From NCBI GenBank assembly GCA_965644295.1, contig CBFFRP010000079.1, forward strand, positions 124,170 through 188,169: a stretch of DNA of 64,000 nt, read 5' to 3'. Positions within the stretch are counted from its first letter, which is position 1, and each line of letters begins with the position of its first letter. The notes below the pieces were generated by a model. The model saw only the letters and a list, made by a program, of their open reading frames with translations. It had not been told where the DNA came from and ran no database searches. Both the position numbers and the translations under genes were made by a program. Source of the stretch: Paraphysomonas bandaiensis (lineage: Eukaryota; Protista; Chrysophyceae). Shown here piece by piece: positions 23,898 through 34,710 of this stretch.

Positions 23898-25745
23898 CAG
23901 CGCATTCTCGATATATCGCGGAAAGTGTCCTGGAGAGGAAATCGCGATATATCGCAATATCGCGATATACAATTTAATAGTAAAATACAGCACTGTATTC
24001 CGCAAAGTCATAGAGAACAAGTTTAAGGAGCTTAAGACTGTGCAATATATCCACAATGTCGTGTCTGTATAGCATAGTACTCCTTGTACTGAATGGCACA
24101 TGCAAAGAATTTGTGAAATAAGTTATATATCATTATTTATGGAATTTATGGTATTCAATTTCTTAACACACTTACTACATTCCTAGCTAACAATAAGATA
24201 AAATTATTAAATTTCATGGACTTCAGAACCTTTAGTACGTGCTGAAAAAAACTGATGCAGAGAAGTTTGTACCTTAGAATGATTCTTGTGCCTTTCTGTA
24301 TGAATATTATTCTGCACTTTTCTGAGGAGCTCAATATGCGCTGTTGAATGCCCCTCCTGGGTAGCATAATCGAGTAACATTAAAACAGCATTGTCGGCTT
24401 GCACAGCAGTAATAGCACTATCATTTCCATTGGTGTTAATACAATCATCCTCGTCATCGTCATCGCCTTCGTCCTCTAAAGACATTGACTGCTGAAGTGC
24501 AGTGATACTGCTCTTATTTGTTCTTCATTATGTGTCATTATAATAAAGAATTGATCTTTATAATAGTAAAACAATGTTGTGATTATTAGAGTGTTAGTAA
24601 TGAACACGATAGAGTGAAAATTATGAATAACAATATAGAACATAGCAATATTCAACCTATGTTGTACAGATGGTATGTACAAACTTAAGCATATACAATA
24701 GAGAGCTCATATAGCATAAAATAACCTGATAGCTGGTTCTTACACGCATTAAGGTTTCCGTAAATTGAATTATTAGTACTTGTCTTATAATGTCACTTGA
24801 TAATGAAACCCTACTGCTTAACCAATTAAAAGTTTTCTCATACTCATCCTCTGTATCAAAGTTTGACATTATATGAGAAGTATTAACTTAACAACAGAAG
24901 GTAAACTTATACTCAATGCTTCAATTCAGCTTTCAATTGCCTGCACTTCGATGTTCACTCCAAAGTCATATTACGCATTTGTTTGAGGTAAATATCCCCC
25001 AGTGCATTTTCCTTAGTGTACTCTTCAGTAAGTGCCAAACATGTCTCCGCCTTTTTCGGCTTTTGCCCAAGTTTCAATCAGGTGTCCAAGTGTTGCTATT
25101 TGTGAACTCCATGCATTCTCAGGGAATGACTCCAGAATGGTCTCATGAGCCTCCTGTTATTGAGGGTATGTAACGAAGAAATTTCTCAATAACAGGTATT
25201 CGAAGTTCTTGCAGCACGCGACATTGAATATCATGAGACATATATCCTTCTTATGAGCAGACGTCCTTCGATGAGAGAAAAAGACTCTTGCGCTTCATTA
25301 CATTTCATCCTCAGGTTCGCATTCAACGAGAGTGTCGTCGACAGGATCTTATATTGACTCACTATCACTCATGTTATCAATAAATGTGATTAATATACTA
25401 TGGATATATGTTCATCTAGAGGTTTTTATGCTCCCCAAAATCCTTACCCCGACAAAAAATCTACATGGTAAGGATTCCAAATTTTACCCCCCCACTCTCT
25501 CTCCAGGGTAAGCATTTTGGTAAGCATTTTCAAAAACTTACCCCGAAAATGCTTACCAGGGTAAACAGAAATTGATTTTCGGCGTTTTTTGGTAAGGAAT
25601 GCTTACCAAAAAAATGCTTACCCTTGTAACAGAAAATGACCTCAGTTTTCCATTATAATTATGTGTGATGAAGTGTCCTGGACCAAAATCCGCGATATAA
25701 AAGGGTATCGCGATATACATACCGCGATATATCGAGAATGCGCTG
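23898..25745 (-). mobile_element. Non-autonomous pogo/Tigger-like DNA transposon (Tc1/mariner superfamily)
   Basis: 24-bp TIR CAGCGCATTCTCGATATATCGCGG at both ends, TA duplication at 23896-97 and 25746-47, subterminal ATCGCGATATA repeats; transposase C-terminal relic at 24207-24485 with an acidic stretch and the PIP box QTSLHQFF. Confidence 0.88.
24545..25650 (-). mobile_element. Decayed MULE-like insert nested in the pogo element
   Basis: 9-bp direct repeat CATTATAAT at 24536-44 and 25651-59; GGTAAGCATTTT/AAAATGCTTACC cluster at 25440-25625; broken minus-strand peptides RHVWHLLKS and NFDTEDEYEKTFNWL. Confidence 0.45.
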
Positions 25746-31078: not shown

Positions 31079-34000
31079 TCATTTTTTTAGAGAGAATCTT
31101 TTTAGCATAGTTTTTTTCAGCCATCCCTGTCCTTGACATTTTTTTATCAATTCTTTTGCGCGCTCACACAAATACCCTGTTTCATGATGAGTCAAGTGCT
31201 TCAGCTGGTGAATAATATCTTTCTGTACAAGCTTTTCACGAGCAGTCTCTGATGCGCATAGAACAGATAACAGCTCTACAGAGAGCAGTTTTACATCATG
31301 AGGAATGTCATTAGTATCCAAGGGATTGCCATGCTCGTGATGAATGAGGCCAAGCAATACCTCAGGAAGGCCACTGTTAAATACCTCTTCGTGCATGTCC
31401 ATATCCTTTCCCATGATTCCAAGTACACGTCCTACTGCAATTTTCAGATCAACTGGTGCATCCCTTACGAGCAAAACTAGCAATTCAAGTCCACTTCGCA
31501 GTATATCTCGTCGCAATGATGACTCCTTCGCCAACACTCGTAACACTTTGGCTGCAGTAAGCTGCGACCCCAATCGATTCGTTGGCTGCAACGTATCTAA
31601 CAATATCGTTATTGCACCAGACTCAGCGAAAGAGTACTTGAGGTGATCGTGTGATGCCCCTTTGGCAAGAACCAATAAAATTTCGCCGGCATGCTTTACA
31701 TCTTCAGCACTTCCAGACCGAATCTTACGAATCAGGCATGATAAAACAGTTATCTGGGTGATGCTTCCTTCCCCATCCAATGCGGGATCATGCTTTAAAC
31801 TGTCCAATACCTGAAGTGCGGCAGGCGAACTAAAAAACTCTCCCTGCTTCAGAAATGTGACTAATGCAGGAATCGCGCCAGCAGCAAAAATTTCGTTCCT
31901 TAAGGTAAGGTCTTTGCACATAATTTCAAGATTCCAAAATGCAGCATACTTTTCGACTTCATCTCCATTTTCGAACAAGTTGACCATCAATAAAATTGCA
32001 TTTGTTGCTAGAAATTTATGTGAGAGTGTAACTACAAACGAGACAACTAACAAACCTAAAATGATGTCACGCAGCTCAGGCTTTTCACAAAATATTGCTA
32101 ATATCCACATCGCCTCTTCACGTTGAGCATTTGATCCATCATCAAGAAGATCAACCAATTCATTTATCATTCTGCATTAGCACCAGTCATAACAGAATGA
32201 AAAGTAAGTTATATATTCTTCTACGCTTACACATAATGTCACATCATATACATACACCAGACTAACCCTGATTGAACAATTGCTTCTAATTGAGCAGGGG
32301 TGCAATGGCGGGCCATCTTACGTAGTATGACGCCTATTCGAAAGTTACATTACGCAAATAGATCGCAATGTTACAATAATACACACCAGAACTAAATCGA
32401 ACTTTCTCGTTGCCCTCTCGAATATTTTCCAAAAACTCGTGAATAGCCTCTGCATCAAGTCTATCCTTATCGGTCTCGGAGTGACTTGCTAGCATTCCCA
32501 AAAACTGACTCGCAACAAAGTGCAATTCAGTCCCTTTTCTTAGGAGAGACACGAACTCTGGTATTGCACCTGCATCACAAAAAGCTCCTGCAGTAGTCGG
32601 GCTATCCTTCGAAAGTTCCACTACCATACGTTCAACCTGAAGCTTCAGTTTGCTATTCTCATTTTCTTTCAGCAAGTTAACCAGGTCCCTTGTCAGGTTT
32701 GAAGCTCGCAGTGCTGCTCTCGACGCCTCGTTTTTGCCAGATATTATAGCCATTATGTGAAGTGACTGTATTTTTTGTTCGTCAGTTCCTTCTCGGAAGA
32801 AAGCAATTAATTTAGGTAGTAGCTCATTTTTCACAACATCATCCTCTAAGGAAGGGTCCTGAATGACCACACGAACCGCTTTCAAGATCTGGTCACGCTG
32901 AGAAAACGAATCGGTGCGATTCACAACTAACGTATCAAATACGACTTGTCTCTGGATGGGGTCCTTAGCAAGAGCCACGAGCTTATTGGTAGCGGCGATC
33001 CTTGTGTCAGATGAGCCCCTCTTGACATTGTCCACTAACTGAGGGACAACTGATATCTACACCATAGTCAGTGCTACATATATAGATATATAGATATATA
33101 GATATATAACTTGCAAGAGCGCTAGATATATACATACATATAGGTACTTAGAAGGGCGACAGATGCATATATACACATACACAGAAAAAGATAAATAGTT
33201 ACATATACTTATATATAGAGATACTGATGTCTATAGATATACATTTACCAGGCCACTACATACATACACATATAAAGGTCTCTCTTTCTCTCTATATATA
33301 TATGTGCGTGTATATGCCTACCAGGCCACTACATACATATACATATACATATACAGGTCTGTCTCTCTATATATATGCCTACCAGGCCACTACATACATG
33401 CACATATACCGGTCTCTCTCTTTCTCTTCCTCTCTCTCTATACATGTGTATGTAAGCCTACCAGGCCACCACATACATGCACATATACCGGTCTCTCTCT
33501 TTCTCTATATGTGTGTATATGCCTACCAGGACACCATACACATACACATATACAGGTCTGCATCTACATATGTGTATATGCAGGTCTCTATGTATATACG
33601 TATATCGTTACCAGGCCACTACATACATGCACATATACAGGCCTCTCTCTCTCCCTATACATATATATATATGTATGTGTATATGCCTACCAGGCTACTA
33701 CATACATACACATATACAGGTCTCTCTCTCTCTCTCGATGCATGTGTGTATGCTTACCAGGCCACTACATACATACACATATACAGGTCTCTCTCTCTCT
33801 CTATGTATGTGTATATGCCTACCAGGCTACTACATACATACACATATACAGGTCTCTCTATGTATGTGTGTGTATATGCCTACCAGGCTACTACATACAT
33901 ACACATATACAGGTCTCTCTCTCTCTCTCTATGCATGTGTGTATGCTTACCAGGCCACTACATACATACACATATACAGGTCTCTCTCTCTATGTATGTG

Positions 34001-34413
34001 TGTGTATATGCCTACCAGGCTACTACATACATACACATATACAGGTCTCTCTCTCTCTCTATGTATGTGTGTATGCTTACCAGGCCACTACATACATACA
34101 CATATACAGGTCTCTCTCTCTCTCTATGTATGTGTGTATGCTTACCAGGCCACTACATACATACACATATACAGGTCTCTCTCTCTCTCTATGTATGTGT
34201 GTGTATATGCCTACCAGGCTACTACATACATACACATATACAGGTCTCTCTCTCTATGTGTGTGTGTATGCTTACCAGGCCCCTGGAAGAGTTTCTCTCC
34301 ACAGCTTTAATAATATCAAGATCCGACTCACATCGAACACCATTGATAGTCTTCGCCTCATATTCGACTAATGAAGGTATCTCCTCATTATCTTCTTCAA
34401 TGAAATCAGACAT
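31079..34413 (-). CDS. Armadillo-repeat protein, multi-exon
   Basis: Repeated AGAIP.LV.LL ARM motifs; exon 1 34413-34276, 1219-nt intron 34275-33057, exon 2 begins ISVVPQLVDNV in phase 0. Confidence 0.85.
33240..34281. repeat. Intronic minisatellite, about 16 units of 60-80 bp
   Basis: Unit GC(C/T)TACCAGGC(C/T)ACTACATACATACACATATACAGGTCTCTCTC..TATGTATGTGTGTAT. Confidence 0.95.
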
Positions 34414-34479
34414 CTTTCCTTCTTAATGTATAGTACGACTGCTCTTAAGGCTTATATAGAGATATGTGTGTATCTATGT

Positions 34480-34710
34480 GTATGTATGTATGTATGTATG
34501 TATGTATGTATCTATGTGTATGTATGTATGTATGTATGTATGTATGTATGTATGTATGTATGTATGTATGTATGTATGTATGTATGTATGTATGTATGTA
34601 TGTATGTATGTATGTATGTATGTATGTATGTATGTATGTATGTATGTATGTATGTATGTATGTATGTATGTATGTATGTCTAGATGTATGTATGTATGTA
34701 TGTATGTATG
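34480..34710. repeat. (TATG)n microsatellite, left flank of the Crypton-like element
   Basis: Direct. Confidence 0.98.

Follow-up and report, generated by a model that had tools for sequence, protein, structure and literature searches.

Copies of the exon 1 splice donor in a tandem array within the first intron of an ARM-repeat protein gene of Paraphysomonas bandaiensis

The first intron in the coding region of an armadillo (ARM)-repeat protein gene of the marine protist Paraphysomonas bandaiensis is occupied, over about 85% of its length, by a tandem array of roughly 65-nucleotide (nt) units, each of which repeats the 5' splice site (donor) at which exon 1 ends. The gene lies on the minus strand of the window, the 64,000-nt stretch of contig CBFFRP010000079.1 (assembly GCA_965644295.1, positions 124,170 to 188,169) that was analysed, and positions given without a contig name are those of the window. 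An intronless protein, P0002, independently supports the exact removal of the whole intron from the outermost donor. The array is probably a minisatellite, confined to this locus and prone to form hairpins, that took in the 5' splice site along with the 6 nt of exon 1 before it, and that is excised whole with the intron, leaving decoy donors. It would then represent an ordinary expansion of an intronic repeat, not a new mode of splicing, which would account for an intron more than 10 times longer than the local norm.

The donor-bearing array and the excision of intron 1

Tandem Repeats Finder (TRF) detects an array with a period of 65 nt at 33246-34255 (14.7 copies, 75% matches, score 829-1032), a more regular exon-proximal stretch at 33670-34281 (9.4 copies, 88% matches) and a higher-order period of 193 nt, equal to three units, in the younger part of the array (93% matches). 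Splitting the minus strand by script at CCTG/GTA, where the slash marks the splice boundary, gives 16 donors, namely that of exon 1 (34276/34275) and 15 internal ones, and units of 61-85 nt. Five donors, including the real one, read GTAAGC, nine read GTAGGC, and GTAACG and GTAAAT occur once each. In the window, a 14-nt junction motif is matched 14 times, compared with 0.03 expected from shuffled sequences. A preliminary description of the window had reported tandem units that regenerate the exon 1 donor, and these are confirmed, at about 15 units.

The internal donors are preceded by the 7-mer TGGCCTG in nine cases, TAGCCTG in five and TGTCCTG in one, so that the copy of the exon end GGCCTG extends over 6 nt in nine units and over 4 nt in five. 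Two subtypes of unit, A (TGGCCTG/GTAAGCATACAC) and B (TAGCCTG/GTAGGCATATAC), alternate irregularly. Thirteen units finish with ...GTATGTAG right before the 7-mer, and the spacing from internal donor to AG is 54-72 nt. According to the earlier description, every unit combines a donor and an AG with a copy of the exon end; the donor and the exon-end copy hold up, while an AG directly before the 7-mer is present in only 13 of the 15 units, having been lost in units 11 and 12.

Between -6 and +15, the real junction and the four internal GTAAGC copies have the same sequence; at -7 they part, the exon having G and the units T. The left edge of the repeat therefore appears to lie 6 nt inside exon 1, and the identity across the boundary suggests that the junction itself was amplified by tandem duplication, as had been proposed. 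This is the pattern expected of a tandem duplication whose breakpoints fell in the exon on the left and in the intron on the right. At the junction of exons 1 and 2, the residues are not conserved in four relatives (27-42% identity), which indicates that the last two codons of exon 1 are under little constraint.

The splice itself is seen in P0002, a protein of 602 amino acids (aa) that was retrieved by a full HMMER scan with exon 2 and that has a single source, a 2,086-nt JGI/IMG contig. P0002 starts within exon 1 with VERNSSRGL and continues directly with ISVVPQLV, its residues 1-9 mapping to 34302-34276 and its residues 10-234 to 33056-32382. All four introns (1,219, 53, 95 and 48 nt) are missing from it, and one residue differs from the translation of the window. 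Because its source contig is too short for the 1,219-nt intron, and because of the one-residue difference, P0002 can be regarded as an independent, RNA-derived record from the same species. The joining of 34276 to 33056, with all 1,219 nt removed, is thus independently supported, and the gene model given earlier was right. The acceptor of intron 1 is GTGTAG/ATA, and the only branch-like motif in the 3' tail of the intron is a CTGAC at 33067-33071, 15 nt before the intron end. Exon 1 is unique in a search of the genome. In the protein searches, the exons were queried singly, and the joined frame was examined by a local script. Table 1 lists the features of the gene and of the array.

Table 1. 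Parts of the ARM-repeat protein gene and of the array in its first intron (window positions)
Feature	Position	Strand	Basis
Coding part of exon 1; 46 codons from the ATG at 34413 to ...AGG GGC CTG, phase 0	34276-34413	-	Open reading frame; last 9 codons are P0002 residues 1-9
Authentic junction of exon end and 5' splice site, GGCCTG/GTAAGC; incomplete first copy of the repeat	34270-34281	-	Used in P0002
Intron 1; 1,219 nt, phase 0, GTAAGC...GTGTAG, first of the coding region	33057-34275	-	P0002 mapping
Putative young homogeneous domain, units 1-9 (61-69 nt; subtypes A, GTAAGCATACAC, and B, GTAGGCATATAC)	33691-34275	-	Pairwise identity, TRF
Two neighbouring 193-nt three-unit blocks	33666-34051	-	Repeat family D1 and TRF period 193
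Putative older decayed domain, units 10-15 (61-85 nt), AG lost in two	33249-33690	-	Unit split, identity
3' tail of intron 1; 192 nt	33057-33248	-	Begins with the last donor copy, GGCCTG/GTAAAT, followed by barely recognisable unit remnants
Exon 2, ARM-repeat region	32387-33056	-	P0002 mapping; Pfam ARM_ARMC5, ARM_PUB and Arm below or near cut-off
Rest of the gene after exon 2 (introns 2-4, exons 3, 4 and last exon; stop at 31079)	31079-32386	-	P0002 mapping; ARM_PUB above cut-off
Intron 2; 53 nt	32334-32386	-	P0002 mapping
Intron 3; 95 nt, exon 3 before and exon 4 after	32172-32266	-	P0002 mapping
Intron 4; 48 nt, in frame	32008-32055	-	P0002 mapping

Growth of the array and its place in the genome

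The array would have started when a segment of about 65 bp, reaching from the exon end GGCCTG across the 5' splice site into the beginning of the intron, was duplicated in tandem. Slippage or unequal exchange, at times in steps of several units, may then have raised the number of units to 15. Such a step is suggested by the two neighbouring three-unit blocks, 33666-33858 and 33859-34051, which are 97% identical and whose duplication appears to be the most recent visible event. Because this latest duplication is internal to the array, away from the exon edge, growth probably occurred by ordinary out-of-register exchange or slippage and was not strictly anchored to the exon. Each unit has the architecture of an imperfect palindrome, composed of a CATA/CACA run, a GA-repeat loop and a TATG/TGTG run. 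Compared with shuffled sequences, single units fold with z values of -2.3 to -3.3 as RNA and of -0.9 to -3.2 as DNA, better than the shuffles as RNA and mostly so as DNA, so that the self-complementary stem noticed previously is real but modest; units of this kind may favour slippage and could have helped the array to grow.

Units 1-9 are 73-98% identical in pairwise comparison, units 10-15 are mostly 42-78% identical to any other unit (unit 12 being the exception), and the 3' tail, counted as unit 16, reaches 25-44%. Homogeneity decays away from exon 1, as had been observed before, which suggests that the nine exon-proximal units are still homogenising and that the distal ones have decayed.

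Two probes were used to search the 62.6-Mb genome. A 20-nt junction motif gave 11 matches and a 131-nt probe gave nine, these counts being lower bounds, as the DNA search skips very common words, and both probes match only G000:C79:157414-158453. The array is therefore a locus-specific minisatellite, and its interpretation as a dispersed or mobile element was rejected. About 10% of the 184 kb of contig analysed consists of tandem repeats, and a second repeat-swollen, intron-like gap of about 290 nt is located 45 kb away, outside the window, at G000:C79:113052-113345 (plus strand, locus L036). This gap starts after ...GCAAGAAT/GTAAGTAT, ends with ...CTGATACTATCACAG, and is occupied by a minisatellite of the TATGAGTG type (periods 22, 31 and 42 nt) that differs from the 65-nt array. 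Together, the abundance of tandem repeats and the second minisatellite-filled gap suggest that swollen introns are a habit of this genome.

A genome-wide pattern count gave no excess of triple strong-donor arrays: triple GGTAAG at intron-size spacing occurs 11 times, compared with 10 times for a reversed control. Triple TGGTARG occurs 70 times, compared with 49 in the control, and most of these matches belong to a dispersed element or to coding-like repeats. In these pattern counts, donor-bearing intronic arrays are represented only by the present locus and by C444:3845-4141. The latter (G000:C444:3845-4141, plus strand) contains a 71-77-nt tandem unit, ...TATAG-TG-GTAAGTTATCG..., with an AG, 2 nt and a strong donor in each unit, an architecture like that described here. 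No such array is present in the BART-domain loci of the genome that were inspected. At 25466-25596 (plus strand), the window contains a dispersed element of about 130 nt that starts with TGGTAAGGATTCCAAATTTTACCCCCCC and has at least 10 near-identical copies on other contigs. Long and very homogeneous arrays containing TGGTAGG, with units of 54 nt and 69 nt, respectively, are present at G000:C363:476868-478602 and G000:C379:86254-86881; with unit lengths that are multiples of three, they are probably coding repeats.

Arrays of an exon end and its donor thus exist but are few, which is compatible with the chance capture of a junction in a minisatellite-rich genome whose introns are short; when a unit of about 65 nt overlaps an intron that is itself 50-100 nt long, it will frequently take in a splice site. 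That such arrays are instead a recurrent and mechanistically specific feature of first introns, arising through a mechanism tied to the 5' splice site or serving as decoys tunable by copy number, seems unlikely. If it were true, a cell whose introns are of about 50-100 nt would have to settle reliably on the outermost of many identical donors spread across more than 1 kb, and the arrays would provide test cases for the choice of 5' splice sites.

Internal splice sites and competing explanations

Under the minisatellite interpretation, the pre-mRNA would undergo a single splice, between the first donor and the one acceptor that is preceded by a branch-like motif. The 15 internal donors would be decoys, the 13 internal AGs would probably be unusable as acceptors, and transcripts using internal sites would meet an early stop and be non-productive, so that the minisatellite could be neutral or nearly neutral. 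The consequences for the reading frame can be read directly from the joined sequences: any internal donor joined to the real acceptor leads to a stop at codon 64, and the first donor joined to an internal AG leads to stops at codons 47-93.

The absence of branch-like motifs bears on the possibility of nested splicing, in which units would be removed as mini-introns of 54-72 nt before the outer splice, shortening the 1.2-kb intron and leaving the mRNA unchanged. Such a process would be compatible with the clean junction in P0002; moreover, 13 units offer a GT...AG pair whose spacing falls inside the 48-95-nt range of the supported short introns, and the internal GTAAGC donors are the same as the working one. 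In all four introns supported by P0002, however, the AG is preceded at 8-19 nt by a CTRAY, TRAY or YTNAY motif, whereas 12 of the 13 internal AGs have none within 42 nt upstream, and nested removal is not needed to account for the product. It is accordingly regarded as improbable.

Several observations weigh against the minisatellite interpretation. The argument from branch sites draws on four reference introns, and the attempt to obtain a larger set, by expectation-maximisation on GT...AG candidates that join open reading frames over the 184 kb, with and without a codon-usage filter, gave no clean signal; in the predicted intron set, the enrichment of branch motifs is weak (TRAY, p=0.02; CTRAY and YTNAY not significant). 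Over the whole region that pairs with U1, four internal donors are the same as the real one. In a partition-function fold of the pre-mRNA, the unpaired probability of the first donor is 0.29, compared with 0.27-0.40 for the other GTAAGC donors. Finally, a single RNA-derived record covers the junction and starts just 27 nt upstream of it, so that minor isoforms, or products cleared by nonsense-mediated decay (NMD), would be invisible. The preliminary description had opposed its chain of mini-introns to the use of one junction throughout; the joining of 34276 to 33056 is the only junction seen, but in this one record, and minor intermediates are possible.

RNA structure as the cause of the choice of the first donor was rejected, as this donor is no more accessible than the other GTAAGC donors; the GTAGGC donors are somewhat more paired (unpaired probability 0.11-0.36). 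The choice among five identical donors could be due to proximity to the cap, to exon sequence upstream of -6, or to the degradation of wrong products. The intron thus offers a natural experiment, with five donors identical over 21 nt and ten near-identical ones, of which the only transcript record uses the first; if deep RNA data agree, the locus could be used to ask how a eukaryote with short introns picks among identical 5' splice sites.

The surplus donors might also have a function as regulatory decoys, binding the U1 small nuclear ribonucleoprotein (snRNP) and diverting a tunable share of transcripts to NMD, or affecting transcription or processing at the first intron, with copy number setting expression. 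Consistent with this, the intron has 15 surplus donors, of which four match the real one exactly along 21 nt, all decoy products have early stops, and the array is situated in the first intron, near the promoter. On the other hand, the distal units are decaying and two have lost their AG, as expected without selection, and triple strong-donor arrays are in no genome-wide excess over the control, which leaves this function with only a small chance of being real.

Stepwise or recursive splicing, and the combinatorial frame-shifting isoforms that could result from it, had been put forward in the preliminary description. In their favour, units possess a donor, an AG and a 7-nt segment between the two that could serve as a microexon, but the evidence supports neither idea. 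A script found no AGGT[AG] within the 1,219-nt intron, so that it contains no AG/GT recursive site on which a ratchet could act; the internal AGs are followed by T(G/A)GCCTG, not by a donor. With these 7 nt between AG and donor, each recursive step would leave 7 nt in the mRNA, and no such insert is found in P0002, whose junction, GL/IS, is clean. A TAGCCTG microexon brings an immediate in-frame TAG, and the script found no product with one or two microexons that stays open through exon 2, all of them being frame-shifted or stopped. Chains of three 7-nt microexons are the only open class (142 of 286 combinations), and they would add seven residues. The lack of branch-like motifs upstream of the internal AGs applies here as well. 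Furthermore, a query with the read-through open reading frame of exon 1 retrieved no short exon 1-containing proteins from a collection of 5.8 billion proteins, no other proteins sharing residues 1-100 of P0002 were found, and among metagenome contigs, in a collection that may omit records of this genome, there were neither contigs with the spliced junction plus 0-30 inserted bases nor relatives of the locus. This absence of alternative forms is weak evidence, given the single record and collections that perhaps omit this genome. Recursive splicing through 7-nt microexons, with isoforms that are frame-shifted or longer by seven residues, is regarded as very improbable.

Equally remote is an assembly artefact, in which the array or its length would stem from the mis-assembly of tandem repeats that, at 88-98% identity, are hard to assemble, because the irregular order of unit lengths (61-85 nt) and subtypes, the decay gradient and the unique flanks argue against it, and the presence of exons 1 and 2 in one mRNA requires an intron to lie between them.

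Two further candidates of a different kind were discarded. A small nucleolar RNA (snoRNA) is not indicated, as no Rfam snoRNA is found in 32900-34500 at E<=1 and the units have no TGATGA or CTGA box pair. A microRNA or mirtron is not indicated either, the Rfam matches, to the microsatellite-like families mir-297, mir-466, mir-3149 and mir-1277, scoring only 20-32 bits, compared with gathering scores of 81-119.

Relation to known intron types and neighbouring features

The closest relatives of the present intron appear, by analogy, to be human introns with tandem arrays in which each unit bears a 5' splice site, providing many equivalent donors; they are said to have been described by Zhuo, Madden, Elela and Chabot in PNAS in 2007, and to have been defined by the alternative use of the repeated sites in complementary DNA (cDNA). 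As in that type, usable-looking donors are repeated here (16, the four internal ones identical from -6 to +15 included), and one serves as the 5' end of the intron. Unlike what is reported for that type, only the outermost donor is seen in use, in one record, and none of the well-preserved units contains the acceptor.

Recursive splice sites, such as the ratchet points of Drosophila and the recursive-splicing exons of vertebrates, are defined by a juxtaposed AG/GTRAGT. Introns that contain them share with intron 1 their length and the regular intervals at which donor-like and acceptor-like signals occur. Here, in contrast, AG/GTRAGT is absent, and the 7 nt between AG and donor do not permit rejoining to a regenerated donor without an insert.

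Minisatellites within introns include a 25-bp repeat in intron 18 of ABCA7 (PMC13747324) and those of C. elegans, which have been linked to splicing decisions (PMC4039745). As described, intronic minisatellites resemble the present array in being locus-specific, head-to-tail repeats of units of tens of bases that are removed with the intron, with subtypes, higher-order periods and decayed ends. The present unit differs from the ABCA7 and C. elegans repeats in that it includes the end of the exon and the 5' splice site of the gene itself, and in that the array takes up most of its intron in a gene whose other supported introns are 48-95 nt long.

In the Rogers model, introns are gained by the tandem duplication of an exon segment containing AGGT, for which the potato RdRp gene (PMC4974935) and Drosophila (PMC2891723) provide examples. 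The two situations have in common a tandem duplication that bears splice signals and is tolerated because splicing restores the original mRNA. Gain of the Rogers type, however, creates a new intron from an exon, with exon copies at both ends, whereas here an existing intron was lengthened and no new intron position arose, so that the earlier suggestion of an intron gain caught in progress is not supported. The end of intron 1, ...CACTGACTATGGTGTAG, and the end of exon 1, ...TCCAGGGGCCTG, show no similarity, and thus a Rogers-type origin of intron 1 itself is not indicated.

For gene-finders and readers of such sequences, the locus carries the caution that repeated donors should not be taken for exons. 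Elsewhere in the gene, intron 4 is free of stops, so that a plain scan for open reading frames reads through it, and the resulting 363-aa frame has 16 residues that are absent from P0002. Upstream of the coding sequence, a TATA-like TCTATATAAG sits about 45 nt before the ATG of exon 1, and a (TATG)63 microsatellite at 34463-34710 ends about 10 nt from it. Like this neighbouring microsatellite, the unit of the intron array is made of CATA/TATG runs.

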